In this document: piece after piece, positions 20,472-44,208 of the stretch
How the letters are laid out: each line of letters opens with the position of its first letter
Position numbering within the stretch: position 1 is the stretch's first letter
From: Orbicella franksi
Lineage: Eukaryota
DNA length: 64,000 nucleotides
Assembly (NCBI GenBank): GCA_964199315.1
Contig: OZ116702.1
Span: 8,866,001 to 8,930,000 of the forward strand
Direction of reading: 5' to 3'
Program-made: the position numbers and the translations under genes
The notes under the pieces: generated by a model
What the model saw: the letters and a program-made list of their open reading frames with translations, nothing else
Told to the model about the DNA's origin: nothing
The model's database searches: none

Positions 20472-20750
20472 TTAAGAAATCCGGTCTTTAACACGCTCGA
20501 CGATCTTCTTGGCAAGCTGCAAGGCTTGTTGAGCCATTTGGGCCGAGTAAACGTCGTTTGGAATCTGAGGAAAATGCATCCGATCTGGATAGCGCATGCG
20601 TGTTGAATCGCCAACAAGAACCTCCAACTGCCAAGCCAATTCGGTTAACTCTGAGTCATTCAAGCCGTTGCAATTCTGGACCAAGTTGTGGACACTAGTC
20701 TTGTCGGCGTCTATTGTGTACTGAGCGGCTTTCAGGGCTTTCTCCGCTGC
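20472..20750 (-). CDS. SACS: Sacsin-like copy A, last exon (C-terminal part of HEPN)
   Basis: Acceptor TTTTGTAG| at 20751. Reads AAEKALKAAQYTIDADKTSVHNL...RMRYPDRMHFPQIPNDVY...KDRIS*. 279 nt, phase 0. Confidence 0.92.
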   Translation of the reverse strand, partial: AAEKALKAAQYTIDADKTSVHNLVQNCNGLNDSELTELAWQLEVLVGDSTRMRYPDRMHFPQIPNDVYSAQMAQQALQLAKKIVERVKDRIS

Positions 20751-21101
20751 CTACAAAAGCAGCATTCGCTTAGACTGAGCAAGTGTTAATTTGATAAGTT
20801 ATGTTTTCAATTTTGATGAAAACGGTCGGGAAAGGGACAGTTATTTGAGCAACTGTAAGTACTCCAAGAGTAATTAAAATAGCACAAGCACATTTTTTAA
20901 AATAAGTATATGCTTGGAGAATTTCATGTAGCTGTACATTAATCTCCACATGCTGTCGTTATGGTGAAATATTGGATGCATCAGTCAACATATATGGCTT
21001 CAAAATGTGCTTCAAAATATGCATGTACAGAATGTTTCTCTTACCACCTGCACCTTGCTATCAAATTAGATTAAAGCTAGGGAAACACTTGTTAATCTTA
21101 C

Positions 21102-24100
21102 CTGGTGGCATTTAAAACATGCCCACTCATAGGAAGGATTGCCATACACAATATCATTCTCCACTGCCGCGACATCGGCCTTAGCTTGTCTAAACCATCG
21201 CTTTGCTTCACGTGGTTGAGGATTCTTCCTGTGTGAGTTTCGAGGTGACCGTTGTCTTTCTTGATATCCCTGGCGCTGCGTGTAATGTTCCCTTGCACGA
21301 GCTCCCCAGGACGTAAAGAAATCGTCGTAGGATCCACCCGAAGTTCTGGCTCCTTTGTTAGGTCTTCTACTACCCCGTGGTTCACCTCTTTCCAATCGGG
21401 AGGTCTCGTGCTGTATATGTTGACAAACTTCTGTGCAGAATTCTTCATCGCCAAAGTTTTTATCGGGATGCCACTGCAGATACAGTCGCTTAATGATTTT
21501 CCTTCTCTTCTCTTCTGGTAGTTTCCATGCATCCTCCAGGAGGTCTGAAATTTCATCAAACACCTCCTGTCTACTTCTGTTTCTTGGAGGCTCCCTTCGC
21601 TGATCAGATAAAACAATTGCTGATGAGGTGACAGAAGTCACACGATGGAATTTGTACAAGTCAGCAGCATCGACCACAATTTCTTGATCATCTCCAATAT
21701 TGATTTTGTAGCGCTTTGTCAAGGGGCTGAAATCTTCATTTGCCCTTACGTCGATAATCACAGCGTATATGTAGGTAGCGTTTCCTTCTTGCCTCTGCAG
21801 ACTTGGGTCGTCTAGCTCGTATCCCACATATTCGCCGGGTTCAAATTCTTCAAAGGCATCATTCAGCAAATGGTGGTCTTCAATTGGGATAAAGCTCCCG
21901 GGCGGCGGAAAGATTTCGTCTTCTGCTGGACGATTCGAGTCATCTTGTCGAACACCCATATTATCTAACAGCGACCAAATTTCGCTGGGGGAACACAGCA
22001 ACATGGTAGGAATAAGCACCGCCATTCTACCCAGAAGCCCCAAACATATTTCTACGATAACACTGGATACCAATGGTATGGCAGAGGTAATTTCATCCAC
22101 TGCCGATGTAACATTAACATACACCCGCCATATCTCTTCATCAGAAACCACAACTTTGTCTAAAAAGGACTTCACTTCTTCTTCACTTTCAGGAATGGGA
22201 ACTTCATTTGAAAAAAGCGTGGTTTTGAGGCTTTTTACAACACAAAGTTCGATTCGGCGAAGCCCTCTTGCGATACTGTCAATCACACTCTTATTGATAT
22301 CTCTCTTCTGTCGACTGTTCTCGTCTCGAATTAGTCTGATAACTCCAGAACAAAACTGAGGGGAAGAGAGCTGGTGCTTCAGTTGTGTCACAGCTTGATT
22401 CATCACCAATTCAACGGTCTGTGGGGCACTCAGTTTTTCTTCGACAACCTGAGAAAGCATTTTTGGCTGTAAAGCTGTTGGTAACTTCATCGTTAGCTCT
22501 TTATAGTTGATCTGAGTAGAGCTGCAGGTCACATCCATCAAACGAAGGTCGAGTAAGAAAAGTTGATTGAAATTGCGCAGTCGACCCCGCAGAGAGGCAG
22601 GTGCATCATTGAAAATAAGATCTGAAGACTTGTGTAAGGAGACTGGTGTTACCGTCTGGATCCCCTCAGAAGAACTTCCTGTTAAAGACATTCCCGGAAG
22701 GTAAAGCGCTGAAAGGCTCTCCACCGCTTTGGCGTTTTCTTCTAGTCTTTCGAAGAAGCCTTTCGTTGCCTTGACACACATTCTGACTTCATTTGGGTGC
22801 AGTTTTGATTTCTGGCATTTCTTCTGTAACATGTCCAACACCATAGCATAGTGGGAAATTGTAACAACTTTGGAACAGCCAAGGCTCTCAAAGAGTGGGT
22901 GAAATTTTCCAAATTCTTTAGGAATTCCGTAAAGAAATGGTCTAATTTCAAGATGCTCATACAGCTCGAGGACTGCTTGACAAGGTAGAATGAGTTTCTT
23001 TCCATGTTCAACCAAAACGAAAGGGATATTCTCCAGGACTTTCTTTGCCCCACTGTGTGAGATTGGTTTTGTCAGCAAAAATGTGTAAATGCGTTCCATT
23101 ACTGCCATAATTGTGTGACATTGCTCAGACATCTCCTCGTTGTTGTTTGCGAGATATACACATATATTTTGGCAGTGACCAACAACAAGATCGACTGGTG
23201 GCTTCTCTAAAATCTGGAGCTGTGAGACAAAAGAATTACAGTACTGGGCCATGCTGACACCGGGAGGGCTGTTAAGCTCATGAAGACGACACCGTGGGTT
23301 TGCCCATCTTGGAAGTAAATGCGCCTTCGTCCAAACAATTTCTGCATGTTCAGAGGGAACTGCCTCTTTGAACGCAAAGAAAGTAATCTGATGACCTACG
23401 ACGCGCCCAAGCGGTGGAAAAAGTGCTTGAAGGGGTTCTCTTACGGGATCCCCGGCCACGAAACGAATATCGCAAATACTTTGTAGTAGTCCCTCCGCCA
23501 CTACATTTTGTCGGTGTATGAGATGATTGACCAGAACTGTAGATTTCTTGTAAGTGCTATCATCTGGCGCTGATGCGGCCTCATGTGCAAGTTCCGTAGC
23601 AAATCTCTTGAAATTGTTCTTGGTAACTTCATGAACAAGACCAATACGTCGCAGAAAGTCCAACCACTCTGGTGAATTGAGAGGCTTTGAAGGAAACATG
23701 CTTTCTGAAAGCATTATGCTGAAAACATCAATTCCAGGGTCGTAGAAACAGGAGGCAGTCTTCAGACTCCCATCCGCTGAGGGAACAAGTGGGGTATTTC
23801 TTAAACATTCCAGTAGTCTTTCCTGGTCGCCATCTTCTGTTTCGAAATCGTCCAAAATGGATTTCCGGATAAATTCCAGGTGAACCTGCCTTGCATCCTC
23901 GCTAAGAATGGAGAACTTTGTCAGAATAAAGCTGCAATACACGTCAACAGCAGAAACACATTCAAGTTCCAGGAACTTGAACAACTCGGAGAGACTTTGC
24001 CAGGATTTCAGAAACACTACATTAAGCTCACGCTCCAACACATCTATTCCCTTTTGTGGTATTTCATTTGGTAGAACACACACTCTGCGATCCTTGAGTC

Positions 24101-27100
24101 TTATCAAACCACCATGTGTTGCTTCATAAAAGGGTAGCCTTCTTAGGATGATCCTGTCGGCATCTCGCAGGCACTTCACACTTCTACTGAAGTACTCCAG
24201 GATGGTGATACAATCCGGGGAGCCCAGCCTTCCTCTAAGTGACTGCGGGTCTAACTCCATCTTTTGATCAAGTGATGTTAGAAGTGATGCAGGGACCTTC
24301 AGCGATGCAACAATGATACGAGCGAGATTAACCGAGTTTTGAGATGAGCACGCATAGGTACCTGAACCCGTGGTTGAGAGTGTAGTAGAGTTAAGTTCAG
24401 GTAGACCAAGTTTGTGCAAGACGTCCACGAGTTTCTGGCTTGAAGAATCAGCACTTTTGAAGTCGAGGACAGATGCTGCTTTTCCCAGAGGCACAAGGAA
24501 ATTTTCAGCGGGTGGGGGCCCACTGAACTGTAAGAGAGAACGGAAGGAGCGCTTCCCTTCTGTGTTTTTCGCCTCGGTAGCAGGAAGTATGCTCCAGTTC
24601 GACAGGGGTTCAAGTGCTCGCGCAATCTGAAGGTTCCTGGTCTGCGTATCCATGTTTACGTCATCGACAACATCCCTCACAATCTCATGAAGAAAAACCC
24701 ATACCCTGTATATCCATCGTCGGTTGGGGGTAGCTTTTTGGGTTGGATACCACTCAACAAACTCTGCCTTTCCATAGCGTTCCTGTTGCAATGTTTGGGG
24801 TAAGTTCTCTGCGAATGCTCTTACATCCAAAGGCTTCAAAACGGACGAGTTTTTGGTTGTATCATCACTAAATATCTTCCTGTAAACTTGCTCATGAAGA
24901 AAGATATGTGGTGAACCAGGAAGAATATCTTGATATCGAGAGAGGAACTTGGGTTCTTCGCTTGAGAACAAATGAAGACGATTGTCTTGCGTAAGAAGCA
25001 GTGGAAGACCTTCCAGCTTATCGAGAAAGCTTGCATCACCTTTGCAGTACTGCAGCACCACATTAACTCCAAGAACATCTTTCAATGTTGTTCCATCTAC
25101 TTGACAGGGAATTGGCCCAATCGTGCACAAGGGGTTCTGAGAACTACGTGTTCTGTAGAAATCTATAACAGAGCTTGGAGAGATGCAGCATGTAGTTATA
25201 CCAGCTCTCAAAAAGGATTTGTGCAACGACAAGGAAAAGGCCACGAGGTTAAAACCGCTTTCAAGAAGTATTGCCTCAAACCTCTTTATTGTTTCCGTTT
25301 GGGATTTATTTGTTTCCTTGTCAGGGGACATGGCAAAGGGACCTTCTACTTCAAGGTTGTTGAAAAATGCTTGCTCCCTTCCATTGCTGGTTGGTGGTAG
25401 CCACGAAACTTCTACTACAGTTCTACTCTTCGCAGTTTTGCTGGCGACTTCCATTGGTCTTCTTCGAACAACTGGTATGATTTTCAGTTCTCTTCTGTTG
25501 ATTTCTTGATAGACAGAGTCAACCAGCGTCTCCCAATACTGTTCCTTGGGAGGTAGACGTGGGAAAAAGGTTTCGTAGAAAGCAATCTTGTACAGGATCT
25601 CATCTTCGGTGCAGGGGTTTCTATCTTGGATTATTGGTAGCTGAAGAAAATTTCGCACTTCGACCAACAGCGTAATGTAGCACGATGCCACGACATCTTG
25701 CAACAATGCATTATTCCAGTCACTCTGGTATCCACCAGCTTCGTTGCTCCACAAATTTCTTCTTGCCTCGTGTTCCAGTGCAAAGTGACCATTAATGTGA
25801 ACTGGCAGCTTAGTTTCGAATGGAAGTGGCAGAAAACAATAAGCTTTTTTTCTTCTTTGTACATGGCATTTTTGTACAGATTTCTTTTCCAAAAGGCAGG
25901 CCACACCGCCACGAGGAAGCATCCCAAGTTGATGTTTCTCAAAGGCATTAACGATACTCTTCTCCACAGACTTCTCAAAGCCCATCTGTTGAACAATTAG
26001 CCACTTTTCTTGGTTTCCAAGAGTGTCTGTGATGCTCAAGACATAGGACACTCTTGCTACTTGAATGTCAGTTGGAAGAACTTCTCTTCCCTCCTGTAGT
26101 AGCCTTCCAATCTCTTTGATGTAATTGGCAAATGCTCGTCTCTTGAGTTCATCCTCCTCTGACATCACTGCTTCGACTGTGTAAGCATTCTCTAGATCCC
26201 CACTTGTTCTATTGACTTCACAAAGGGTTATCTTCTTCACATTGTTTACAAAAAGGAGAACTTCAAATAGCTCTTTCTTCAATTCCTCCATCATTGTGTC
26301 CAGCTTTTCCAGTGACACAGAACTTGACGATATTTTGGATTCTAGAGCCATATGCGCTGTTCTCAGAGGAAATCTGAACATGGTTGCGCTATCTCTTGGA
26401 AAGTGTTTTCCCAGATAACATGGAAAAACATCCGGAAACCTTCTCTGAAGGGTTGTGTCGACTTTGATCATTAGTCCAGGTTCTTCTGAACTTGCACCAG
26501 GAGCGAACTTACAGTGGGGGTCAAAAACGCACAAGACATCGCCAATCTCCTCTCCTTTTGAAATGAAGGACGGCGCATCAGTCAAATGGTAGACAGCATT
26601 AAACCCGACACCATATTGACCAGTTTTATTTGGATCGTCGCCCTTACTACCCTCGCCAAGATTCCGTATTCCTTCAATATCGGCATTGGTGAAAGGCTTG
26701 TTGTTGTACACACACAAGGCAGGTCCCTGTAGTGCTTGCCAACTGTCTTCAAACACTTTTTCTTTGGGATGGTGTCTGGGGTCTTTTATGAAACAAATCT
26801 CAGTCGCTTTTGCATCATCAGCGTTTTGAAGAAGTTCTTTCAAAATTTCCTTCTCGCATGGATAGCATGTTAGAATACGTTTCAGGCGATTTGTGAGTTT
26901 CTCCCGCTGACCAAAGGGAATGCCAACGACATGAGACCGCAAAGCTTCTTCTCTGCGTGTTTTAACACCGACATAGTTACACGTTTCCCAAGGAATTCTA
27001 GTGCTAACAAAATGCACGCCTGGCTCATCAGGCATCCAAGGACAGTCCTTGATGCAAAGCTCGGAAACTGGTCGCAAAACTCCTCTCGAGTCAGGAAGAT

Positions 27101-30100
27101 AAACAGTTCCACATTTTTCCTCGACTTCAGAAGGATCGCATTCAGAATCTCTGAGAGTTTCGCCCAGTTGATTCGCCAGATGCACGGCAGTCTGAAGACT
27201 TTTTTGATCAAGTTCAGTTTCAGCGAAGCGGCTTTTCATTTGTAGAAGACTTGAAATGAAATCTTTTTCCCCAAAATGGTCCCTTACACCAGCCACTTTC
27301 ATCAGTTTTGGAAAAGCCTCCGCCAAACGTTCTGGAAGCTGGTAAAGGTATGGCGAGCAGTCGACTCTGAGATGAAAAGCCACCTGACTAGCAAAAAGAA
27401 ACTGTCTTCCGTTAAGGATGAAGTTCTTGCTATTCAACAATTTCTCGATAGCCTTCGAATTGTTAGCAAGCGCTTTATCTAGATACGAATAAGCAGCGTG
27501 GCACAAATGGCTTATCTCTTCATGTACATTGAACTCTGACGATTCAACTTTGGTGGACATAGCTACTTCCAGTTGAGCTATTACATGGGCCAAAGTCGCG
27601 TGTTTTTTGTCTAGCCCCAACAACGGTCTAACATTTCGAGGGATAAACACTCCAACTAATGGTTCCGTGCAGCATAAAAGGTACTTTTTGTCTTCCAGAA
27701 AGACATCATTAGGTGCGAGGAGAACTTTGCTTCCTACCTCATCTCCTTTCCATCGAAGAGGAAACGAGGCAGGCTTCTTAAGAACTGGAAGAAACTTTGC
27801 CTCCAAAATGCGTCTTCCAATGATACTGTTTGAGGGAATTTTATCTTCGTATTTCATCTTCTTCTCCATAAATTGTAGCAATACCATCGTCCGCTTGCAC
27901 GCTGCGTCACTGTTGACTTCATTTAGTCGTTGAATACTTTCGGCTCTCTCTGCAATCTCGTGCCAAGGAAGATAATCCGACACCATTCCCAGAGTCTCAA
28001 GTTTTGCAAGCCGTTGAGTGTGAAGGAAAGTATCTTTATTCCCAAAAGGAAACCTTCCATCGCCAGAAAGAAAGAGATGGGCTGCGTCTTTGCTTGGATG
28101 TATGAGTTGAGATGGATACTTGAGGGTGTTACCAAGTGGTGATGCTGGGATGCAAGCATGCGTCCTTATCAGGTCATTGCAGTTGATATCCAGAGCATGA
28201 AGCACTAGTGCATCTCTTAACTCTGGAGGTACAGTGGAGATGTTTGGGAAGAACAGTTCGCAAAAAAATCTATCCTTGTCGTAGATCTTGGGATTTACTA
28301 CTTCTCCCAGTCCACAAAATTGGAACGACCTTAAGACATCCGCGGGAACATCAATGACCACTGCACTTCCTTTCATAAGCAGCTGGAAAACTGTGAGCGA
28401 GATATCTCCTATTAGCGGCTCCTTTCTAAAATCTGGATCAAGAAATGCAATTTCATCAATATTTAGCCACTTCTGTCCGTCAGAAAACAAAGAGTAATTT
28501 CCTCTGGCAACTTGTGTATAGAACGACTTCATGACTGGCCAGCAATTATGATGAGTCTCACAAGCTTTTGGCCACAACGAATGGAACTTATAAGATCCGT
28601 CAGCAGAAACAATGGACCTCAGATCCTCGAGAAGGCAGAGATAAGCAGAAGCAACAGAATCTTGCATGAGTATATTGTTCCAGTCTACTCCATAACACTT
28701 CTTGTCATCTTCAAGTTTTTCCTGCAAATGACGCCTGTTAGCAGCTAATGCAAATGCTCCATTTATGTGAATAGGAAGGCCACTGTGAATTGGAAGTGGG
28801 AGGTAGCAAAACAAGATCCCGTTGACATCTAATCCATCAGCTGTCTTCTTCACAGGCAAGGGCAAAATGGTGCCAGATGTATTTGGAACCAGCTGAACAG
28901 CTGCCCCCGCCGATGGGAGAAGGCTCAAATCATTCTTAGCAAATTTCAGTGCTTGACCATTACCCATGGAAGACGCCACAAGCCAGGTGCTACACTCCTT
29001 TTGATAAGGTACGTCATATGCGAAGAAACTCAGACCGTCCTCCGTAAAACTGCACTTGATGTTAACCTTCATGGCCGATTTTATTAGTTTGGTTGGTGCT
29101 CCCTTCCTAAAATTTCGAGTTACCTGTGACGACACTTGAAGAAAATTGCATTGCTTCAAGAAATCCTTTTCCTCTGAGGCCAACTTCATTGTCGCGGCTG
29201 GTAGATTAACAGGGACAGACAGGCCTCTAACTATTCCACCTTGTGCTAGTGACTTGCTTACTTGAAACAGTAATGTCGCCTTTCGGTCTTGACTGGGAGA
29301 TACTGCCAAAGAAAATACACTGACATGAAGGACATTCTGCGTGAAGAGGAGTAAGGTATTGGCTCCATTAACGAGCATTAGCAACAATTCTCGTATTTGC
29401 TGGTCATCGTATGGTAGCTTCTTTATCTCACTTCTTTCAGCTTGCTCGCTCGTTCTCAATGGAAATCGAAAAAGAGTTCCATCAAATGAATTGTCTTCTT
29501 TATCAAGACGTAAATCACAGCCAAAGATACCAGTGAATGGCTTGAACTGATTGGTGAATTTTCGAAGCCTCTTCACGTCCTTGTTGAGATCAATCTTCAT
29601 TCCTGGCTTCATTTTGTTCTTAATGGCCTTCCCGAGGTATGACGTGTGAGGATCAAAAATGACAAAATAGTTCCTACTAAGGAACATGGGCACATCTGTC
29701 AAATTGTACACCGCATTAAAGCCAAGTCCAAACCTGCCAATCTTTTCCGTTTCGTGCTCTTTTGTTGCCTCATTCAGTTTTGCAATGTTCTCAAAGTCTT
29801 CATCGTTGAATTGAGCGTCATTGTAGACCCACAATGCAGGACCTTGGCAACCTTTCATGCCTTCGTCGATCAAGCATGTCATGGCATCCTCGTTCGTCCT
29901 TTCATCATAGAGAAATCTGACCTCGGTGGCACCGGCATCGTCTGCGTTTTGAACAAGTTCTTTTAGAACTGAAAATCCATCCGTGTACTCCTCCAGAAGT
30001 CGGTTCAGCCGAGTAGTAAGCCTCTCTTCCTGTCCAAACTCTTCTCCTATGGACAGCTCGTCCGGGTCCAGCATTCGATTTGTGAGACTTGGGACACCAA

Positions 30101-32212
30101 GTCGTTCAGCAGTACTGTTAGGGACATTGGGGTGTACATAAAAGTAGTCCATGTCTTCATCGTCACCTTCTCTCTTCAGCCAATCGTGGTGGGAGTACAT
30201 ACAGCACTCTACTGGTTCAAGCCTTACATCTGAGTTGTTTTCAGTGTGTGTTGGTAGAACAATTTGCCCTTGTAGCTCCTCTGTCAACGTCTCGCTTGCC
30301 AACTCATTCAGAATGTTGACGGATAACTGAAGATCGTGCTTTACTTCTAAAGCGCTGGACAGGACATTTCCATCGTCATACTTCTCTTTAATCATGTGAA
30401 GGACCTGTACCAAAACAGTTGGATTACTGCGTTCCCTCATGCCAAAACGGTAAAACAGTTCACCGTACTTAGCCATGTCGGGAGGAAGAGAACGTAAGTA
30501 GGGTGTAAGATCAATGTGTGGCTTACTGAAAAGCACATGGCTAGGTGAAGAAAAGCCCTCTCCATTCCACACCCAATCAATTTCTTCTAAACAGTCATAG
30601 GCAGGATCCCCACCAACGTCCTTTGACGTTAGCACTCGACTAAGCAACAAGTAAATTTCGTTTACCACAACCATAAAGAGCGGTTTTTCTTCTTTTGAAT
30701 ACGATCTGATCACATTCTGCAACTGCTGAATGACCTGGAAGACACCGGGTAGATATTGCCAGCCAAAATACCTGGAAATTTGATTCGTTGGCTGTACTTC
30801 TACAAGAGGCATAACTGTTCCAACGAGGTTTGCGAGATACTGACTTTTCACTTCAGTTGGCTTGAAAAAGTGTTTGTCATTTTCTTCGCCTGCTTCAAAC
30901 CATGCCAATCCCGCAGGATAGTTAGGGGGCCTCTCTTGCAACCTTGAAACCCACGGAATGTCCTTCAAAAGCGATCCTACTGGTTGTCCATTGACTGACT
31001 CTGACAACTTTTGGGGATTGTCTCTGAGGAACTCCAAAACTGCTCTTGACTTCTGCTCTGCAGTTGGAAGGTGAGTAAGCCCACTTACTAATTTCGCACT
31101 TTGGTACAAATCGTATCCAGTGATGTTGTCCTCGCTTTTCATTCCAAGTTCTTCTAACATGACGAGTACAGAACGTTCGTTGTACGCGACTGTGGGGAAA
31201 ACATCTTCATTGACAAATAACTTCTTCAGGATCAGCTTTCTGGGATCAAAGAGGTCTGATGCTCTTGCGCGCCCTCTTTGTGTGGAGACAAAGGGCAAGG
31301 CCTGTAATTCCTGTTTGAAAGTGGAATTTTTGCGAATTTCCCTAGTGTGGTTTTCCAGTACATAAGTCAGGAGTTTGTCAATCTGCTCTCCAGTGTACTT
31401 TCCTCGTTGTATGTCTGGAAACACTATTTGGCAGAGTAACTCAGTTGGCGTTAGAATCTTGACGTCTAATAAAACTGCAAAAGACTTGGAATCGTGCTCG
31501 CTAATGTCAATCAGCTCTCGTACAGGTGAAACCGGAAGAGAATCAGCAACCGCTGCACAAAGACCCTCCGTCTTTGATACGAACTTCTTGGACAGCGTCT
31601 GGAAAATGGGAAGCGAACACAGAAGATTGTACTCCACTTGTCCTACAGATGACCGTCTCACATGGGCAAGAAATGACCTGAGGAGGTGCTTGTCGTTAGC
31701 AGATAATATCTTGCGTACGATTTCTGGAAACTTTCCAGCTGCCATCTGGCCAGAGGAAATCACCATTGCTTTCAAAACGCCTTGTGCGGAGGGTGGATGT
31801 ACAAACGCCCCCAAGACAGCGGGATGGTGTCTTATATAGGCTGGAAAATCATTCATAATAATTACACCAAGCTTCCTCAAAACATTTGTTAGTGTGTCGT
31901 CGAGGCAATCATCATTTAGGCGTTTGACAACAACTCTAGAAGGGCGGCAAAGTCGTGCCAAGGTTATAGGTGTGTGTACTAGGCTGAGTGGAATCAGAGG
32001 TAGTTTTCCAAGGCTCTGAATATCTTCCTCTCTCGTGAAATGTTCTTGAAGATATCTCCAGACAACTTTGATCCAGTCTCTCGGGGGATGATTGTGATTA
32101 CTGTCATCGGGGAACCACGAAACGGTATTACCCTTATTCCACTCATCCGGTAAGGCCTCCGAGAGAAGAGATGGTACATCATCTTCGCATAATAGCCGTA
32201 ATTGTGTAACTT
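21102..32212 (-). CDS. SACS: Sacsin-like copy A, giant exon (11,111 nt): sacsin repeats 2 and 3, J domain, start of HEPN
   Basis: Open frame with ELVQNADDAG/KIGRFGLGF (SRR2), ELLQNADDA/KTGQYGVGF (SRR3), WHPDKN, and AKRWFRQA..EWACFKCHQ. Acceptor TTTCACAG| at 32213, donor |GTAAGA at 21101; phases are consistent. Confidence 0.96.
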
Positions 32213-32519
32213 CTGTGAAAAAACGATAACAACATAAAGAGTGACGGTCTCCTTCATGAGACACGCAATATTAGGACGTTTTTCACCATAATAATGTAAA
32301 ACCAACGAAAAGGAATTGATTAAAGGATAACAACCGGCATGCCTCAGTCGTCTTTGTTACAGTTTTGGTAAGTTAATTCGTTGTAAGGCCGTTTTTCTTT
32401 CCGCTGTGCCATGCGACTTATGAAAGGAATGTCATTAACTACTGTAGATATTAAAATTAAGAATAAAAAATGCTCGGTAAGATAACACCATAATCGAATC
32501 CAAATAGGAATCATTCTAC

Positions 32520-33091
32520 CTTGATCAGCTGCATCATTCAGCTTCCCAATGACGTCCCCATCGAGTTTTTCGTCAAGGAAACGGTGTCCTAAACCAGGAA
32601 ATAGTTGTCGTGGATGATTACGCGAGCAGACATAAATTCGCTCTCCCTGATCTGAAAATTTTGTGAAGGTGCCATTGAAGAGGGGCAACAACATCAAGCC
32701 GCAGAGTTTGTCATATTTGCGGTCTTTAAGACAAAACTGAAGAAGGAGTAGTTTCTCTCGTCTATCAAGGTTCTGGTAACAAGAAGGGACTTGCTTCAAT
32801 ATTGCTCTTGTACCACTGGGTGTGATATTCTTTACCCCTGCATAGCAACTAATGGCGTCCGTGACGTGGCTGGGTACTGAAACGACAGGCACATCAGCTG
32901 CTAGCAACACTTGCTGAAGCAGCTCTTTAGGTTCATCTTTAGACAGCAGGTCAAAAACGGCTTTCTGTACTGTCAGCCATTGCCCAAGATGTGCCGGGGT
33001 GTAAACAACTTTTTTCTGTAGTAGCAAGTGAAACAATACATCTCTTATCTTTTCCCACTTTGGGTCAATGGAGCTGATGTCTGGCCATGCT
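32520..33091 (-). CDS. SACS: Sacsin-like copy A, exon 5 of those resolved
   Basis: Acceptor CTTACAG| at 33092. Reads (K)AWPDISSIDPKW...DAADQ. Donor |GTAGAA at 32519. 572 nt, phase 2 to phase 1. Confidence 0.88.
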
Positions 33092-33616
33092 CTGTAAGAA
33101 ACAAATAAGCGTAACACTGCAGTAGTTCCCTCGTTTCAATACCAGCATAGCAAGCAAGACTCTTCTCAAGAGCCATGCTTGCTATACTGCCTGTGCCTTG
33201 TAAACATTTTTGAAATTACATTTATTTATAGACGCAATATACGACTTAGTTCTTCTCCAAGAGTACCGAGCGTTGGCTCGGTGAACAGCGGTAGCCAGTT
33301 TTAACTTCAATGCTCTACATACTCCGTGTTTGAATGAAATAACATTTTTAACAAGTCCAGATTACTAACAAACGGTAAAAAGCACGACAAACTACGCGTT
33401 CGCGATCGTGGAAACAAAATGGGTCCAACAATACTAAGAGCTTATCATGTGCTAACAACCATCGATTACTTCTGGGTATAGAATCAAAAATCTGTAACTT
33501 ACGTGAAAGCACGTTTAAGGGCCAACACTGAGTGAATATTTTGTAGTTGGAGGTATACTTATCCAAGAGCATGACAGTTATTATCCGAGTCACTTCTCAG
33601 ACAAAATAACACTTAC

Positions 33617-34610
33617 TTGAAGATGGATGTCCTTGGTACGAAAAATGATTTCTCGTTAATTGCTTCCAAAATCATCGTGGCATACGCTCTGGGTATCGCC
33701 TCCTCGAGAAGACATCTGTTCCATAGTAACGACTTGTCCGTCAGCTGCCGACCACTCGTCTCCCGATCCTCTTGATCCGCATTTGGAGATTTGATATAAC
33801 GCCTGTTCTGACTCAAAGCAAAGAAGCCGTTAACGTGCACTGGCAAACCTGTCAAGCTCCTCTTTTGCACCGGCAGAGGCAAGAAGCAGAACACGTGGCC
33901 TTTGATGTCGGGTGTTTGCAGTTTGGGACCTGTTGGCAGTGCCATGGCGACACCCACTGTGGGTAGATAGTTAAGCTCTTTATCTGTCATTAGCCTCTTA
34001 AACCTCATAGAAACCTCCCCTCCACAAAAGTAATTGGTAACGAGGAAAGAATGCTGCTTCACGGGCGAGTGGAGCTTTACTGTCTCTATCGTGACAGGGT
34101 AGGTCACAGTGACAGATTCTGTCATCACTTTTCCAGGTTTGATCTGTGCGAGAAACTCCTTTCTCTTCGCTCGAACTATTTGGAGACTTTGATCGGCGAT
34201 TCTAACTTGGAAGATCCTTTCAGGATCAGACTCTGACTCTTCTCTAACATAAAGCTCAATTGATTCCAGGTGTTGAAGAAAGAGGAGAATTAAGTGGGCG
34301 TCAGCCTCAAAACTTTCAAACAGTGTATCCATCTTCTCTGCAGAGTAGAGTGTTTCTGACAACTCGGAGGGTTTGGTCCTAAAAGGGAAACGGAACAAGG
34401 TGCCATCGTAAAATCCCTGGGAAAAAACATCTTTCGTACAGTCAAAGATTCCTTGGTAAGGAAGGAACTGGTCTGGTATTTCGTCCATTTCTGCGCGGTC
34501 TTCGTTGAGTCGCCAGTGTTTTCCTGTTCTTCTGTGCCGCTTGTCAGAAAAGTGAATACCATGAGGGTCAATGAAGCCAATTTGGGAATCACTGAGTAAA
34601 CTTGGTAAAT
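33617..34610 (-). CDS. SACS: Sacsin-like copy A, exon 4 (SRR1)
   Basis: Acceptor TCTCAG| at 34611. Reads DLPSLLSDSQIGFIDPH...GTLFRFPFRT...FCFLPLP..GLPVHVNGFFAL. Donor |GTAAGT at 33616. 994 nt. Confidence 0.92.
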
Positions 34611-35096
34611 CTGAGATAGAAGAGTGAAGAAAACATGACTCAGGGGACCACTATATGGTGTCAAGTGCTTTTATTTAAGTAACGGAATATTGAATTCAAT
34701 CTTGAAACAATTGTTTCACTTTTCTAAACAAAGTAGGCCAATTTAATTAACTAATAGAAGACAAGAGTTTTAAACGTTTCTCTTTGCAGCTATTGTCGTT
34801 TTTCATCTGGTTCAATAAATAAATATGAGTCTTTAAGCAGGGTCTCTCCTTCAGTTATGATTAAGAGGGCGCATATGTGTAGACCTATTTGTTACTCTGT
34901 GAACCTTAGATTCTCTGTGATTTCATATCACTGGATGATTTTTTGTATGGAAATATAAAAACGTGATTTGGTCGTAGCTCTCTGAAAAATTCTTTGTGTT
35001 AAGTAGATCTGGAATGTACATCTTTTACCTATGTACCATGTTAGCGACGTATATAAACACTAAAATTTATTAAGATTGTACTGGAGAGGCATGTAC

Positions 35097-35244
35097 CTGT
35101 CATGTGAAATACAGACTTGAATCCCAAACCAAAACGGCCGACTTTCATTGGATCTTCCACTTTGATGCTATCACAGACCAGTCGAATACCCTTCCAGTCT
35201 TCTCTTGTAAACCGTGCGTTGTTGTAAGCGTAAAGCGCTGGGCC
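35097..35244 (-). CDS. SACS: Sacsin-like copy A, exon 3 (SRR1 Hsp90-like ATPase, G1 box)
   Basis: [49 protein letters not shown], with AG/GT boundaries. 148 nt. Confidence 0.92.
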
Positions 35245-35855
35245 CTGTTTGAACATTTCAATAAAAGATATATGAGGAAGTCTTCTGTGGCACTGTGTCT
35301 TTTTGTAGCGTCCCCAGACGTAACTTGTGTAGTCATGTCAACTATAACAGTATGCTGTAGATATTGGCAGATTTTCTCCTTCCCTTATCTAACAACATCA
35401 GAGAAAACTTTAGGCTTTTTAAGCCTTAAAGATGTCTTTGTATCTATAGTTTCTCCAAAATAAAAACGGTTGGATGCACATTTATCTCGTTAAAGATCTG
35501 TTTGTCAGACATAAACGGAAACCATATTCTTCCGTTCGGGAAAATGCCAAGGGCACGCTCCTGTGCATGACTTCGAAAAGCCAGAACCCCAAAGGCTTTG
35601 ACCATTAAATTAGAAGAAACCCTAAGTATAATGCACTGTAAAAAATGACTGTGAAACTGAACTGAGCTGATATTGTGAGTTATCCGTTCATAAGGTTTTT
35701 GGATTTTAGCACAATAATCACTCGGCCTTGAACAATTCAGTGAGTTTTTTCTACGTGGTCTTAGCGGCACATTTTTAATTTTGCGAATTTGCAGCGTTAC
35801 TAAGTCATAATTTTTGTTCATTTTGATCAAAAATGAGACAAAACGATGTGTTTAC

Positions 35856-35966
35856 CTGAAATTGTGCGAGGTCCTCATCAAAAAGATGTTCCGTGTCATG
35901 ATTGTGTTTGTCGTGCAAGAATTTCACTCGACTGGCATTTGCATCCTCGGCATTTTGAATCAGTTC
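35856..35966 (-). CDS. SACS: Sacsin-like copy A, exon 2 (SRR1 N box); absent from the ORF track
   Basis: TCTAG|ELIQNAEDANASRVKFLHDKHNHDTEHLFDEDLAQFQ|GTAAAC. 111 nt, phase 0/0. Confidence 0.92.
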
Positions 35967-36314
35967 CTAGACACGAGAGACTCGAGTGATCAACAATTGC
36001 AAAAATAGAGATGCTACCACAGGAATATCTTTAACATCTAACGCAAAACTGTATAAATTTCTTATACACAGACTGTTACAAAAATAAACGAAGAGTTCTC
36101 GTACATGGCCTTGCTGGTTTTTATCATGAATGTGAAGTTGACGTTGTAATTCAGTATTTAATTGATCCATGGTAGTCCAATATGCTATGTGTTGTATTGT
36201 TTGGCAAAAGGACTATGTCGTGAAATTTGCAAACCTTACTGTAGCAGATAGAAGGAAGGAAATTTTGCTTCCCTGCAATCTCGGAGATTTTTGCACAAAA
36301 GTAATGTGTTTTAC

Positions 36315-36415
36315 CTTCAGTATCTGTCCATCATCAGGATACTGATCTAAGATGGACCTCAACTGTTGGATGAGTGATGGCTGAATCAAATCAAACCCAT
36401 CGTCATCTTTGTTCG
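36315..36415 (-). CDS. SACS: Sacsin-like copy A, most upstream coding exon resolved; start codon not located
   Basis: CTCAG|cg-NKDDDGFDLIQPSLIQQLRSILDQYPDDGQILK|GTAAAA. 101 nt; it requires a phase-1 upstream exon. Confidence 0.85.
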
Positions 36416-38643
36416 CTGAGCAACAAATTAAAAGAAACAGACATTACAGGTAAGTTTCAAAGAAACCACACACAAAGACTGGCCTAAGAAATATCCGAAG
36501 TAACATAATTTCCTTCCTGAATGATCGAGGCTTTTTAAAGTTGCTTGAGACAAGAATTCCACTTCAGTTGAAATCTAATTATCTGATAATTTTGGCATAT
36601 CCGGACTTCTATATGCACCACATGGACTATGGATAGACGAGAGACGTCTCTGTAACCTACGCGTAGGCATTAATTCCCGAAAGAATGCTTCCCTACGCGA
36701 GTTATTAAAAACGCCCCCAGAATATAGAAAACTAAAAATGAAACGCACCCGGATTTCTTACCGAAGTCATCGTTCAGTTATATGGCATAATTTATACCCA
36801 CCCATGAGCAAGATTTCAGATTTTCTTCAAATAGCTTCTTGCTGTTCCTTCACCTGATAATCATCTGAATAAGAGAACAATTAAGAAATAAAATCAGCGC
36901 GCTTTGGAACCATATTGAACATTCAAGCACTGTATAGTTTCAAGCGATGTAAATATTCCGCGACACATACAAGTGTTAATTTTTAATTGAGAAGAACGTG
37001 TAACCGGCTAGGCACCGCTGGATCTTCTTCATTGTTATAGGAAGGCGAAAATCCTGCTGTTAAATCATAAATACGGCATATTTTGCACTTTTGAAACACG
37101 TCTCGCGTCTCGTCTTTCAAATTTTACAACCCAGATTCTGTTTGAAACGTTGCAAATATCTATCAAACTACGTTTCTTTGGGAAATTAACAGGGTCACTG
37201 AAAACGAGCGCCGTTAATCCACGCGTGAAATTATCACAGGGCTTTTAAGCAGCGTGGCGCCGAAAAATAACCCAGATTAAACTCCTTCTGAAACGATGGG
37301 CGAAACTGCTGTCAAAATGAGTCTCAAGTAGCTATGTTCGGCGATTTTTTTAATCCACAACATTCAATGTAGAGCGTTTTCATAGGGCCCTGGGTGCTGT
37401 TCAGTAACACCAGGAAATGTTTACCAAAAAAAAAAAGAACTCATTTCCCAAAGGAGAGAGTCGATATGGCTGCCGTGCTATCGAAGAAGGCTCGACTCTT
37501 CAAATTTAATTCAACGGTGTTTTGAAATGACCATTAACATAAGTTTTGTAAAATGAGTTAACCACTGTCATTTTGATATCGTATGAAATATTTCCATCAT
37601 CGCACGGTTCACAGACAAATTATATTAATTACATACTGATGCGACTCAAGATAACAATGTCGCCCGAATGCGGGAAAACCATTCCGGTGTTCGGCTATAA
37701 ACCGGAGTATTGAAACCTTTTCCAACGCAGGAGTGTGTGCAAAAGCATGCAAAGCATAGTGTTATCACAACAGAATTACGTGTTACCTTGAAAGTCGAGA
37801 ATATAGCAACAAGAAAGAGTTTTTTCGCAGATCTTCCATGTCAGTCTGTACCAACGATTCAGCTGCGTTCTGAGAATCGAGTCAACTTTCCGAGAGACTC
37901 CTTCGTCACGCTCTGTTACGTCATTTGCCCATGGGAAATGTGCTTGGCAACGATATTCGATATGATTTAGCCCTGGCCTTTTAGCCCTTAATTAAGCTTA
38001 AAAATTTATTTGTTCAGCCAATAAATAGTAAAAGTGCTGTTTGAACCTTTTTTGATAGCATATATCTCACTTGTCGAGCATGACATGTCGTTGATCGCCG
38101 AAAGTCCTTTGAAGTTTGCCGGGCTTCATAAGTATTCCTTTCTAAACTATACATCATGCGAAATCTTAAAACGCGAAGATCTAACTCTTAACAAAAATAA
38201 CAATGTCGTACACGAATGTACGGTGCCTAGCATTTCTGGGGTTTACAAGTTTACTTTTCTGTCAAACTGCATGCAAAAGTTTCGCATGGGATATTGTAAT
38301 TATACAACACGCCTGTGTCTGCTCATCGTTTTTTTTTTTTGGAAGGTTTAAAAAATGTTTTTGTTACACTCTGTGACTCACTACGAAAGATCTCCTACCT
38401 TATTCCACTTTCAGATGCTCGTAACTATAGCTCCTGCTTTTTTACAACTAGGAAAACGGCCCCTTCTACCTGCACGGGCCGTGTTTATATGGCTACGAAA
38501 ATATCATCGAAGATTCTTGAAGTGTTTTATTATCTCTTTCCTAGAAAGCAAATTCATTTGCATGACAACAGCAATTTGAATATGAAATGTGACAGTCGTA
38601 TGAAATAACAAACCCTTAAACATCAGGCCCTTGCAGACACTGA

Positions 38644-41600
38644 AATTAATTTTACGATTAGTTATAACTATACTGACAAAATTCTCGAACCTGATTGGTT
38701 ACCAGAACTCCCTATTTTTAACCAAATTCAGGAGCTTAATTGACCAGATAAGGAGTTCAATAACAAAGTATCCAGTAACAAGCGCTGTTTATTTAGTTCC
38801 TCTCAGTGACTCAGTATTCCTATTTATTGAAAAAAAAACCGTTCAGATAAATCGTAAACAGTCTAAACAGGCTTCGCTTTGTCGGAATCTTTCTCTTCAT
38901 TTTGTTTGAAGTTATGATCGATGAATTGTTAACAGGAATTCGTGTCATCCAATTCTGTCTGTAATCCTACTTGTGTTTATTAAAGCAAATCAGACTGTCT
39001 CCCGCTTTTTGTTAATCATTCGTATGATTATAGTTTACAGTCCGAATTGGACTTCACTCCGGTTCATATCACCATAACAAACTGTTTCCACTTCTCAATA
39101 AAGAGATTTCAGTTTCTGAACTTCATTGTTTGAGATACAAGGCATCTATCATTCTGACCAACATCCAACTGAGTAATATTTATCTCTTCCATTATGCGCT
39201 CGAGATTCAGTCTACGAAGTAATAGTTCAGTAATGAGATGGTTTTAGTAGAATTAACAAAGTGTCTTTCAAGTAATCATTTTTAATTCCTCCTGAACATT
39301 TCGGTCTTGTTAAACATCACTCTTTAGCAGAAACGCTTGCTCATAGCTAGTGGCTTGAATTGAGAATCTTTTCTAATGTTGATCCGATCCAAGATTCTAC
39401 AGCTGCTATAAACGCACAAAGACAAAAATCACCTTCAAAAATACAACTGCAGTAAACAATACTTACTTTTGCCATTGAGAATTTACTGAGTAAACAGTAT
39501 TTCGCAGTTTCTCGATCACCGCCGCGTTCGAAGACTTAACACGTTTTTCACAATCAGAATGAAGGTTTAAAGCTGAAGACATCTTTTCTCCACTACTCCG
39601 GCCGTATTTCATTTGAATTGCTTCTTAACGAAGGGTATATTAAGACAGAATGTGAAGCTTGCGAAAAATGTCAGTAAGGGAAGCTTTTTCTAGTAGCTAT
39701 ATCCTGTATTTTGGATTAAGTTTATTCCTAAAGGCTGACTTAATTCCTTCGTTGAATTAGATATTTTGAAATGTTCATATAGCCACGAATTACATTTCAA
39801 TGTAGAAGACTTCCGATCACCTGGCGAAGAATGACTACTTCAAGACATTTCTACCCTTTACATACAAAACATATTTGTAAGATGGCCCGCATTTGGAACA
39901 TGGCAAATAGCGGTAAAGTATAAAACTTTTTGAATTCCTTTGTTTCACCATTCACCTGTTTGCATTGTAATTTTAAGACTCGGTTAATACGTCGAGGCTT
40001 ATAAATTGGAATGTAAAACTGTTCGCTAATTTCTCGCAGTGAAAATTGTATTCACCTCGTCCTAAACAGAATTCACTGTACTCTTTTATTCAATGGCACA
40101 GCTGTAGTAGTTCAATACTTGGTGTTTCTTGACCATTAAAACAGACCACGAATTCTAACTTTTCAAAGAGAAATCATCTTAACAAATGATTACCTGGCAA
40201 AAAATATGACCGCGGTATTTCAAATTATTACATGTCATTTCTTTAGTTCTATAGTGTTTTTCAAAAGAAGAAAATACTATGCTTCTGGCAAAATGGTAAT
40301 TTTCTTTAACTTTCGAGGTCAGAGAAACAGCAAGACCCTTAGACCTGTCTCAGCAGCAAAACACTGATTTATAATTTCTCTTTTGGCTGTTTGTGCTTGC
40401 CTTGCCTGGAAAGTTCGAAGGGTACATAAAATTCTAGCTGGGAATAAAAATTAGGCTCGGCGTGATCACTCAAGAGCGTTTCAGAAAACATTTTAGCGAT
40501 CATTCACCGCCACTAAAAGCTGTGCTTTTTAGTCGATCTTTAGCAATGACTCCCTCCCTTTGAAACTTTCACCAACTCTTTGAACTAAGAGCTTGCTGAA
40601 ACTGACTGCGATCGGCCGATCGAGCAACTTGTTTAAATGCACTTCTTCGGTTAAAAAGTTATAGTTTCTTAGGCTCAGTTACTGAATGGCTGGTATACAG
40701 AAATATTTCCTGTCATCAATTGACTCTGCCACGTTCGTCCATGGCAAATTAGGAGAAGATAACTCCGTCCATTTTGCAGAACATTTCGTTGTTACAGTCT
40801 ATCAATCGTTTCGATCACTGTCGAACATGCATAAATTTATCACGAGCACCATAACAGTTCTTGTAAAACTGTTATTCGGTAAGAAGAAGCTGAGGAGGGT
40901 GAACGGATGACTTGATGAATGACTTTGTGAATGGCTTCATAAATTGACCTAAGTAAAGCATTATTATAAAGGCTTGTTTATCTACAGTTTTAATATATCG
41001 TGTACCTACTCGGTCGTGCCAAACCCTAATCATTATGAGACGTACCTGCATGATACTAAGTGACTCTGAAACTAGTGTCATCGTTCGGCGATATCATGTT
41101 TAAATTTCATTCCGAATACTGTTACTTTTAGACGCTTTATCACGGTGCCAACGAAACTTCCTGTTTAAAATAATATTACGACTCATTTCAAATAATTTAG
41201 CTAACAAAGCGTTTAATAACGATTAGATGATCGAATAAAACTAATTAGTGACCGTCGCATTACCCGGCTTGGTAATAGGAGGGTTGTGATATTATAGTTC
41301 GCACTTTGTGATCGAATTTAATTTGTTCTCGCGTTCAGACTAAATCGTTACCCCGACAACTGAGCGAATGCCGATATTAAAAAAGCTACTTTGCTTTTTC
41401 CCTTGCCCAAACAATCATACAAACCGATAGAACATAACAATATAACATTCTGAAGATTTTCTTATCTTGCACTTAGTTTCAAACCGCTTCTGAGTAAGTG
41501 TTCTCTTTTCACCAAACAGTGCGAAGTGACAGCACAAATAGGAATCAACAGATCCCTTTCCAAGAATTGCCAATGATTCTAGGAATTGCTTTTGTAGCCT

Positions 41601-41868
41601 CCACAAATATCTTTCCGAGAAACCAAGATTCTTATTACATGATAACGCCGCGTGACGTAAGTATTTGTTTTTGTCTTTTTTACCATATCCCGTATGTACT
41701 ATGGCGAGTAGAGTCGCTTATCATCCGGGATAAAGTGGCGCGTCGTTTAAAACAGAGTGGCTGCGGCCTCACGAATTGAAAATGATTTTGCTTGTGTATT
41801 TGGTTTGGCGGAGGCAGAGGGGTAAGATAGGTTTGTACAGCGGATTTGGGCAAAAAGGTTTTCATGAC
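38644..41868. repeat. Tandem array unit 1 (3,225 bp)
   Basis: Starts AATTAATTTTAC..TACTGACAAAATTCTCGAA and ends ..TTCATGAC. Collinear with units 2 and 3. Confidence 0.95.
38659..39078. mobile_element. Non-autonomous element of about 420 bp at the start of each array unit (also about 41883-42292 and 45300-45682)
   Basis: Has an AATCTGATTGGTTA end, internal palindromic blocks CCAATTCTGTCTGTAATC..GATTA..CAGTCCGAATTGG, and a CGAATTGGACTTCACTC end. It resembles a repeat common in coral genomes (from recall). Class not determined. Confidence 0.55.
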
Positions 41869-44128
41869 AATTAATTTTACTATTAGTCATAACCATACTG
41901 ACAAAATTCTCGAATCTGATTGGTTACCAGAACGCTCTATTTTCAACCAAATTCAGGAGCTTGACCAGATAAGGAGTCCAATAACAAAGTATCCAATAAC
42001 AAGCGCTGTTTATTTAGTTCCTTCCGGTGACGCAGTACTCCTATTTATTGAAAAAAAAAAAAACGTTCAGATAAATCGTAAACAGTCTAAACAGTCTTCG
42101 CTTTGTCGGAATGTTTCCCTTGATTTTGTTTGAAGTTGTGATTGATGAATTGCTAACAGGAATTCTTGTCATCCAATTCTGTCTGTAATCCTACTTGTGA
42201 TTAAACAGATCAGACTTCCGCTTTTTGTTAATCATTCGTATGATTATAGTTTACAGTCCGAATTGGACTTCACTCCGATTCATATCACGATAACGAACTG
42301 TTTCCACTTCTCAATAAAGAGATTTCTGAACTTCATTGTTTGAGTTACAAGAAATCTATCATTCTGACCAACATCCAACTGAGTAATATTTATCTCTTCC
42401 ATTATGCGCTCGAGATTTCTACGAAGTAATAGTTCAGTGATGAGATGGTTTTAGAAGAATTTAATAAAGTGTCTTTCAAGTAATCAATTTTAATTCTTCC
42501 TCTACATTTCGGTCTTGTTAAATATCACTCTTTAGCAGAAACGCTTGCCCATAGCTAGTGGCTTGAATTGAGAATCTTTTCTAATGTTGATCCGATCCAA
42601 GATTCTACTGCTGCTATAAACTGACAAAGGCAAAAATCACCTTCAAAAATACAACTGCAGTAAACAATACTTACTTTTGCCATTGAGAATTTACTGAGTA
42701 AACAGTATTTCGCAGTTTCGCGATCACCGCGGTGTTCGAAGACTTAACATGCTTATACATAATCAGAATGAAGGTTCAACGCTGAAGACATCTTTTCTCC
42801 ACTACTCCGGCCGTATTTCATTTGAATTGCTTCTTAACGAAGGGTATATTAAGACAGCATGTGAAGCTTACAAAAAAAGTCTGTAAGGGGAAGCTTTTTC
42901 TTGTAGCTACATCCTGTATTTTGTACTAAGTTTATTCCTAAAGGCTGACTTTATTCCTTCGTTAAATTATATATTTCGACATGTTCATACAATTACGAAT
43001 TACGTTTCAATGTAGAAGACTTCAGCGCATCTGGCGAAGAAGGACTAGCTCAAGACATTTCTACCTTTTACATGTAAAACATAATTGTATGATGGCCCGC
43101 ATTTAGAACATTGCAAATGGCAGTAAAGTATAAAACTTTCTGAATTCCTTTGTTTTACCATTCACCTGATTGTATTGTACTTTTGAGACTCCAGTGAAGT
43201 CGAATATAGCTAGTTCGGCGTTTCCAACACGCTCGGTTAATAGTTTGAGGCTTATAAATTCCAACGTAAAACTGTTGGCTAATTTCTCGGAGTGAAAATT
43301 GTGTTCACCTCGTCCTAAACAGAATTCACTGCACCCTTTTATTCAATGGCACAGCTGTAGTAGTTCAATACTTGGCGTTTCTTAACCATTAAAACGGACC
43401 ACAAATTCTAACTTTTCAAAGAGAAATCATATTAACGAATGATGGAATACCTGGCAAAAAATATGACCTCGGTGTCTAGTAATGGATTTCAATATTACTT
43501 GGCATTTCTTTAGTTCTATAGTTGTTTGAAAGGAAGAAAATACTTGGCTATTGGCAAATGGTAATTTTCTTTAACTTTCGCGGTCACAGAAACAGCGAGA
43601 CCCTCAGACTTGTCTCAGCAGCAAAACACTGGTTTATAATTTCTCTTTCGGCTGTTCGTGCTTGCCTTGTCTGGAAAGTTCGAAGGGTACATAAAATTCA
43701 AGCCGGGAATAAAAATGAGGCTCCGCGTGGTCATTTAAGAGCGTTTCAGAAAACATTTTAGCGATCATTCACCACTACTTAAACTGAGCTGTGTTTTTTA
43801 ATCGATCTTTAGCAACGGTTCCCTCCATTTTGAAACTTTCACCGGCTCTTTAAACCAAGAGGTTGCTGAAACTGACTGCGATCGGCCGATCGAGCAACTT
43901 GTTCAAAGCATTTCTTCGGTTAAAAAATTATAGTTTCTTAGGCTCAGTTACTTAATGGCTGGTATATAGAAATATTTCCTGTCATCAACTGACTCTGCCA
44001 CGTTCGTCCATGGCAAATTAGGAGAAGATAACTCCGTCCATTTTGCAGAACGTGTCGCTGTCGCAGTTTGTCAATCGTTTCAATTACTGTCGAACATACA
44101 TAAAATTATCACGAACACCGTGACTATT

Positions 44129-44177
44129 GATGTGAAGTAAATTTGAAATAATTCATACTTGAACTGCGGTAGTAGAT

Positions 44178-44208
<31 letters not shown>

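Follow-up and report, generated by a model that had tools for sequence, protein, structure and literature searches.

Evidence for recurrent gene conversion across the 5' third of two tandem sacsin-like coral genes, ending inside the second sacsin repeat

Human sacsin (SACS, the ARSACS protein) combines a ubiquitin-like (UBL) domain, three sacsin repeat regions (SRRs) with Hsp90-like ATPase domains, an XPCB domain, and a J domain as well as a HEPN domain, and has a giant exon. Partial concerted evolution of tandem duplicates with a fixed boundary is known in textbook form from the primate gamma-globin genes, RHD/RHCE and the red/green opsins. In corals, a survey of tandem duplicates describes long-lived gene arrays in conserved synteny and states that gene conversion is very rare (PMC10236652), while a heat-tolerance-associated sacsin-like gene of Acropora carries 'haplogroups' more than 100 million years old, the cause of which was left open (PMC8626496). 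Here we analyze two tandem sacsin-like genes, A and B, in a 64,000-nt stretch of Orbicella franksi DNA (assembly GCA_964199315.1, contig OZ116702.1, positions 8,866,001 to 8,930,000 of the forward strand; hereafter the window). Like human sacsin, the coral genes have three SACS/Hsp90-like domains, a C-terminal HEPN domain, a giant exon of ~11 kb and a length of ~4400–4500 residues. Sequence comparisons suggest that recurrent non-reciprocal interlocus gene conversion homogenised the 5' third of the two genes while their 3' two-thirds diverged freely, a reading to which we assign a probability of about 85%. The process, interlocus gene conversion with a stable boundary, is a known one in a family where it was not previously described; our literature search found no paper on gene conversion in coral sacsins. 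The locus resembles the array type of the coral survey in being a long-lived tandem array in conserved synteny, but is a clear exception to the stated rarity of gene conversion.

The divergence between A and B changes abruptly within the giant exon. From A 33238 and B 63897 to about A 29540 the copies are 88.8% identical, introns included, compared with 64% just past the boundary; in 100-nt bins, identity is 80–97% within this tract and 49–75% beyond it. Intron 5 (A 32213–32519 versus B 62891–63187) is 85% identical against 44% in a shuffled control, and the first 135 nt of intron 4 (33092+ versus 63766+) are 81% identical, whereas the last introns do not align (48% versus 42% when shuffled). 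With the Nei-Gojobori method (NG86), synonymous divergence (dS) is 0.254 and nonsynonymous divergence (dN) 0.079 over the 890 codons 5' of the break, compared with a saturated dS of ~2.07, a dN of 0.364 and an amino acid identity of 0.53 over the 2753 codons 3' of it. In 100-codon windows, dS lies between 0.06 and 0.46 up to window 800, reaches 0.70 in the window from codon 850 and is saturated from about codon 900, and protein identity falls from 0.86 to 0.48 within ~150 codons. The SRR3 core is conserved in protein (71–85%), yet its proportion of synonymous differences (pS) is 0.64, while pS is 0.30 in the SRR2 core 5' of the break. Among four-fold degenerate sites, differences occur at 54 out of 328 on the 5' side of the break, compared with 378 out of 639 on its 3' side; the maximum chi2 for a change point is 160, against a maximum of 15 in 300 permutations. 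The support interval lies inside the SRR2 SACS domain (Table 1).

These results agree with most of an earlier note on this DNA, which had described a very similar 5' side with alignable introns and a last intron that does not align, a fall in identity to roughly half of residues within ~100 codons, an SRR3 core conserved in protein yet diverged synonymously, and a crossover zone inside the conserved ATPase core; dS is indeed not uniform along the gene. The '5' half' that the note regarded as exchanged is actually the 5' third, from exon 1 to residue ~920 of the giant exon. A 56-nt run shared by the copies (29623–29678 and 60301–60356) is exactly identical, as the note had reported, but we rejected it as evidence, because a run of at least 56 nt has P = 0.40 at 88.8% identity over 3.7 kb and runs of 75 and 64 nt also exist.

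To place the two parts in time, we compared orthologues from independent ENA assemblies of three related corals, called X, Y and Z. X carries L001 (Ax) and L002 (Bx) on one contig, Y carries L003 (Ay) and L004 (By), and Z carries L005 (Az) and L006 (Bz) on one contig. Four-fold divergence between orthologues, given as 5'/3', is 0.136/0.124 for A–Ax, 0.164/0.181 for A–Az, 0.330/0.382 for A–Ay and 0.378/0.341 for B–By. Because orthologues diverge equally at four-fold sites in both parts, the low A–B dS of the 5' part reflects younger common ancestry and not slow change.

Phylogenies of the two parts disagree. Protein trees were computed from 42 proteins, using A residues 960–3700 for the 3' part and residues 20–880 for the 5' part; the segments were delimited by BLAST, because the internal SRR repeats had distorted a global MAFFT alignment made over the full protein lengths. 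The 3' tree separates A and B clades of 20 proteins each with 100% support, and each clade contains Acropora/Montipora and Oculina members, which implies that the A/B duplication predates the deepest split among the sampled corals. In the 5' tree, proteins group by lineage with A and B types intermixed. An approximately unbiased (AU) test rejected an A-type clade for the 5' data (log-likelihood difference 1399, p 4e-8) and a mixed 11-protein clade for the 3' data (difference 2453, p 3e-47), so that separate trees for the two parts are incongruent, in keeping with the earlier proposal of exchange. The type defined by the 3' part requires eight changes on the 5' tree (at least seven forced by well-supported branches; seven to nine over bootstraps) and one on the 3' tree. 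DNA trees of the eight A and B genes from the window, X, Y and Z show the same conflict: the 3' part repeats (Y,(Z,(window,X))) within the A clade and within the B clade, whereas the 5' part gives ((Ay,By)100,((B,Bx)100,((A,Ax)96,(Az,Bz)100))).

The step recurs in all four species at nearly the same place. In residues of the A giant exon, four-fold change points lie at 909–938 in the window, 912–938 in X, 872–893 in Y and 767–930 in Z, so that all switch zones (~770–940) fall within the SRR2 SACS domain (residues 747–988). A/B four-fold divergence 5' of the change point is 0.165 in the window, 0.180 in X, 0.023 in Y and 0.146 in Z, while 3' of it the value is ~0.58 in every pair. In the nucleotide alignment of the eight genes, the differences setting B, Bx and Bz apart from A, Ax and Az start at about residues 891–901, directly past the conserved ATPase motif. 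At the protein level, eleven robust-coral A/B pairings switch at residues 939–965, with 5' identities from 76% to 97%; in five of these pairings the two genes share one assembly or are sisters in the 5' tree, and six are cross-pairings of unknown co-origin. We found no 5' step in Acropora (P0108/P0104), in the Montipora pairings, in P0011/P0107 or in Oculina P0007 versus P0038, where only the ATPase cores reach ~80%, and P0015/P0096 has a weak 5' step at residue 985.

Each of the four species retains two A/B genes, and where one contig carries both (the window, X and Z), B lies upstream of A. A/B similarity in X and Z runs back through SRR1 to exon 1, and in X ~1.2 kb further; hence homogenisation covers the entire 5' third of the gene: it begins around exon 1, includes SRR1 and ends midway through the Hsp90-like ATPase domain of SRR2. 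The upstream extent in Y is cut off where the By contig is interrupted by a retrotransposon just upstream of exon 5; the element has an open reading frame (ORF) with endonuclease and reverse-transcriptase domains at L004 320–3262, ~0.4 kb upstream of By exon 5 (L004 3693–4289), in the place expected for the exons further upstream. The By contig is short (16.5 kb), with about half the coverage of the Ay contig. In Bz, the giant ORF is broken after 3247 codons and resumes as a 472-codon ORF (L006 19744–21276), through either a frameshift or stop or an assembly error.

Silent divergence also dates the events. The A–B value within the tract (0.165) is slightly above that of A–Ax (0.13), about equal to that of A–Az (0.17) and less than half that of A–Ay (0.35). 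Counts of informative sites among the four sequences A, B, Ax and Bx in 300-nt windows of the tract mostly favor the grouping (A,Ax)(B,Bx) rather than (A,B)(Ax,Bx), with ratios such as 15:0, 14:0 and 23:1, and are about even in two windows (5:4 and 6:4). From these comparisons, the last large homogenisation in this genome would fall shortly before the split from X, the closest sampled relative, while Z and Y have had later homogenisation events of their own. The earlier note had the 5' part exchanged 'much more recently', which is correct relative to the 3' part; the exchange is nonetheless not recent, as it predates the split from the nearest sampled species. A candidate younger tract nested at A 31623–31257 (0 of 50 four-fold sites differ) was marginal (29 of 500 permutations), and we do not claim it, because the four-sequence counts do not favor conversion after the split from X. 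Variants in other sequencing runs were likewise rejected as evidence of ongoing conversion: 14 of 28 tract variants match the B base, which cross-mapped B contigs or an ancestral state retained in other individuals fit equally well.

Three other explanations would have to account for these patterns. If no exchange had taken place, the 5' part would have to evolve more slowly through purifying selection, silent-site constraint or a low local mutation rate, and the SRR2 ATPase core is indeed ~80% conserved in protein even where there is no 5' elevation, as in Acropora P0108/P0104. However, the 5' and 3' parts of orthologues show equally fast four-fold divergence, the tract introns are 81–85% identical while the last intron is at shuffle level, and most of the tract is a fast-evolving linker with dN/dS of 0.3–1.2. 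Furthermore, the 5' and 3' trees are incongruent, and the Acropora pair and P0011/P0107 lack any 5' elevation. The equal orthologous silent divergence and the tree conflict already refute this explanation, and its probability is virtually nil. As a separate observation, parts of the linker that precedes SRR2 (A 31814–31364) show an A–B dN/dS of up to ~1. An assembly artefact, by misjoining or by collapse of haplotypes or copies at the shared 56-nt run, is very improbable, despite the fact that short-read contigs of all three runs examined end at 29652 inside the run, where a 31-mer graph must branch, so that short reads cannot phase across it. Contigs from three independent runs nevertheless bridge 29451–29538 (X1, RNA, 28150–29652; X3, DNA, 29226–29652; X11, DNA, 29395–29652), and since the 5' parts differ at 11% of sites both of them exist, and swapping them leaves the mosaic unchanged. 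In the DNA tree of the 5' part, Ax is the partner of A and Bx that of B, as for the 3' parts, which argues for correct phasing, and the same mosaic occurs in independent assemblies of the three other corals. The misjoin that the earlier note had considered is thus countered at the break itself and by the other assemblies.

Unequal crossing-over or partial re-duplication within the SRR2 core, in which chimeras replaced an original gene and the shared 5' part is a young duplication, is quite unlikely. The array does comprise more than two genes and vary in copy number: X has a second A-type copy, L007 (P0003), on another contig, with flanks collinear to those of L001 (P0002) at ~90% identity. 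In addition, P0107, a protein of the complex-coral lineage encoded on a 1.7 Mb ENA contig, has the look of a genuine chimera, joined to a distant paralogue at this same position. One unequal crossover joining B to A, however, would yield either a lone fusion gene or a set of three in which one 3' type occurs twice. The window, X and Z instead contain precisely B followed by A, both with an ancient 3' part of their own, and in X and Z the similarity starts at about exon 1; crossover followed by loss in several lineages would need more steps than conversion. All four species keep two A/B genes whose ancient 3' parts are distinct, which shows the homogenisation to be non-reciprocal. The earlier note's module swapping thus applies to P0107, the sole true 5' swap seen, and not to the A/B pair, which points to non-reciprocal homogenisation.

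Recurrent gene conversion joins a step in silent and intron divergence, conflicting trees, events of different age in at least three lineages, retained gene order and a common end zone in SRR2. As in other partially concerted tandem duplicates, a block is alike at silent and intron sites and gives way to ancient divergence past a sharp boundary; sequences within the block group by species rather than by gene, and copy number and order are retained. Unlike in the globin, RH and opsin cases, the block takes up the 5' third of a gene of 4400 residues (no less than 3.7 kb in the window, ~7–12 kb in relatives), its boundary falls within a conserved ATPase domain, the end zone is reused across lineages up to 35% apart at silent sites, and there is a second reused boundary near residue 2815. 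We propose that conversion tracts would start within the 5' region, where the copies are already alike, and would end once heteroduplex reaches diverged sequence immediately beyond the conserved ATPase motif; because heteroduplex would stop there, the boundary may be self-perpetuating. Selection for distinct 3' parts may reinforce the boundary, an effect not separable here from that of heteroduplex, and a tract of many kb probably arose through several overlapping events.

Several observations weigh against this interpretation. The tract, at ~7–12 kb with introns, is long for a single animal conversion, and its internal heterogeneity is marginal (29 of 500 permutations, as above). Conversion was not observed directly, such as through a tract that is polymorphic within a population. 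In the comparison of the window with X, the tract mostly keeps its orthology signal, with no sign of present-day conversion in this genome. Since the 5' end of B lies outside the window, the upstream extent in this genome rests on the relatives. GC content at four-fold sites is 0.40–0.44 in the tract and 0.36–0.39 outside it in all eight genes, with no unconverted control, and the shift is largest in the freshly converted Y pair (0.43–0.44 versus 0.36–0.37); so small a shift fits GC-biased conversion but is a weak sign of it.

Further observations point to exchange beyond the A/B pair and to a second boundary. P0107 combines a B-type 3' part with a 5' part closer to P0116, a distant paralogue: informative sites favor P0116 by 170:81 before A residue 915 and the B-type P0096 by 701:194 after it (chi2 192; permutation maximum 14). 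On these site patterns, P0107 looks like a chimera of distant paralogues that switches at A residue 915. Four-fold divergence between L007 and Ax is 2.4% up to about residue 1000, ~12% for residues 1000–2750 and ~25% after about residue 2812, which sets the boundaries of its strata at about residues 770–1020 and 2812. Between B and Bx, four-fold divergence rises from 0.13 to 0.29 at about residue 2817 (chi2 43; 0 of 300 permutations as high). At residues 3000–3250, B is near Bz (9 of 64 sites differ) and Bx is far from Bz (21 of 50), and in a tree of the C-terminal segment B falls outside a group of P0025, P0028, P0041 and P0088 with 100% support. The C-terminal module of B may therefore represent either one of two old haplogroups or an exchange with an unsampled paralogue. 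Together, the P0107, L007 and B-versus-Bx patterns lend support to the earlier note's idea of module swapping outside the A/B pair and indicate two reused boundaries, at ~770–940 and ~2815. In the B-type proteins P0102, P0068, P0039, P0089 and P0100, the last ~800 residues belong to neither the A nor the B clade (stem 0.36, 100% support), although the rest of their 3' part is of B type, and by this placement they would constitute a third kind of C-terminal module.

These boundaries would delimit three modules, from the gene start to mid-SRR2, from there to about residue 2815 of the giant exon, and thence to the J/HEPN end. The Acropora haplogroup gene offers a parallel, since its deep lineages between the last Hsp90-like domain and the J domain resemble the C-terminal divergence of B/Bx and Ax/Ax2; the published description is of a three-exon gene present in one copy, whose lineages are alleles. 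Equating it with A or B was not possible from the text of that paper, and we restrict the analogy to the boundary at ~2815. A wider proposal, which we regard as doubtful, is that the three-module architecture is fixed, with exchange at its two boundaries, and that the Acropora haplogroups are paralogue-derived C-terminal modules kept as alleles, rather than products of classical balancing selection on point mutations.

Assignment to the sacsin family is supported by Pfam matches. SACS matches A with E = 1.9e-160 (two stretches in the giant exon and one in upstream exon 4) and B with E = 9.4e-162, and three SACS stretches occur in P0001, a full-length relative of 4444 aa that is 89–90% identical to A and was used to map exons. 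The GHKL/Hsp90-like ATPase is represented by a HATPase_c_3 match above the cut-off; given the SACS and Hsp90-like domains in the ORFs, the 'SRR' of the earlier note is the sacsin repeat region. HEPN matches residues 4318–4441 of P0001 (E = 7.7e-16), with a partial match at the end of the A giant exon. Unlike human sacsin, the corals have arrays of several paralogues, and neither DnaJ nor ubiquitin-like Pfam domains matched P0001 or the window ORFs at E<=0.01. The nearest named relatives are stony corals, namely Oculina patagonica at ~75%, with Acropora, Montipora and Porites more distant.

The window has a G+C content of 36–45% and zero N runs. Compared with itself, it contains a single large direct duplication, 25678–33238 versus 56329–63897, at 77% identity, with weaker duplicated pieces continuing down to 20469/50954. 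The 14-kb spacer between the genes (36500–50900) holds no third large gene and one ORF of at least 130 aa (48067–48492, minus strand). An RNA contig skips exactly 32213–32519 (GT..AG on the minus strand, joint 32212/32520) and has a loose end at 33091; this splice joint establishes that gene A is transcribed and confirms the introns proposed earlier. Raw RNA reads of run X23 gave no match to the window. B-specific sequence at 56800–58800 is present in contigs of many RNA-seq runs, with 0.64–0.94 of sampled words present, and A and B are probably both expressed. Exon 5 of both genes (32520–33091 and 63188–63765) is the least conserved coding part relative to orthologues, at 70–76% identity to P0001 compared with ~89–91% for its neighbors.

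Table 1. Positions of the two sacsin-like genes and of the segments discussed, in window coordinates.
Feature	Positions	Strand	Basis or remarks
Homogenised tract, copy A (part of intron 4, exon 5, intron 5, first ~890 giant-exon codons)	29540–33238	minus	88.8% nucleotide identity to B
Homogenised tract, copy B	60218–63897	minus	BLAST match ends ~100 nt short of window end, in an intron with indels in relatives
Change-point support interval, copy A	29451–29538	minus	Maximum chi2; inside SRR2 Pfam SACS domain (giant-exon ORF residues 747–988)
Change-point support interval, copy B	60129–60216	minus	Maximum chi2
Run of 56 nt identical to 60301–60356	29623–29678	minus	Encodes FVIFDPH...LGKA ATPase motif; near-invariant in the eight genes compared
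Anciently diverged 3' part of A giant exon (rest of SRR2, SRR3, long region before J/HEPN)	21069–29450	minus	Partner B 51660–60128
C-terminal module of B, apparently of deeper lineage than rest of gene	51660–54390	minus	Boundary ~A residue 2817 (roughly B 54390); divergence jump, segment tree, identity profiles
Gene A, sacsin-like, ~4444 aa, seven exons, tandem with B	~20475–36416	minus	tblastn with full-length relative P0001; Pfam SACS, HATPase_c_3, HEPN
Gene A exon 1	~36416–36252	minus	tblastn of P0001
Gene A exon 2	~35966–35856	minus	tblastn of P0001
Gene A exon 3	~35247–35098	minus	tblastn of P0001
Gene A exon 4	~34617–33616	minus	tblastn of P0001
Gene A exon 5	33091–32520	minus	tblastn of P0001; RNA contig loose end at 33091
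Gene A exon 6 (giant exon)	32212–~21080	minus	Open ORF 21066–32264, 3732 codons
Gene A last exon	20723–20475	minus	Aligns to P0001 residues 4362–4444
Gene B, sacsin-like paralogue; 5' exons past window end	~50963–64000+	minus	tblastn of P0001, Pfam SACS
Gene B exon 5, then intron 4 from 63766	63188–63765	minus	tblastn of P0001
Gene B giant exon	~51666–62890	minus	Open ORF 51657–62963, 3768 codons
Gene B last exon	51208–50963	minus	tblastn of P0001

The locus provides a replicated case of long-lasting partial concerted evolution in corals, where a genome-wide survey judged gene conversion to be very rare (PMC10236652), and whole-gene trees or dS would misdate coral tandem duplicates of this kind. 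In the 5' third, short reads derived from A, B and additional copies can cross-map and thereby mimic high diversity or balancing selection. As A and B nearly share the front end from SRR1 to SRR2 and differ in SRR3 and the tail, the latter are the place to seek a functional difference between them. Sacsin-like genes are repeatedly named in the genetics of coral heat stress and bleaching, and exchange of paralogue modules at fixed boundaries is a testable source of their diversity. If the modular picture is true, exchange among paralogues, and perhaps among paralogues and alleles, would recur and yield combinations of giant chaperone modules.

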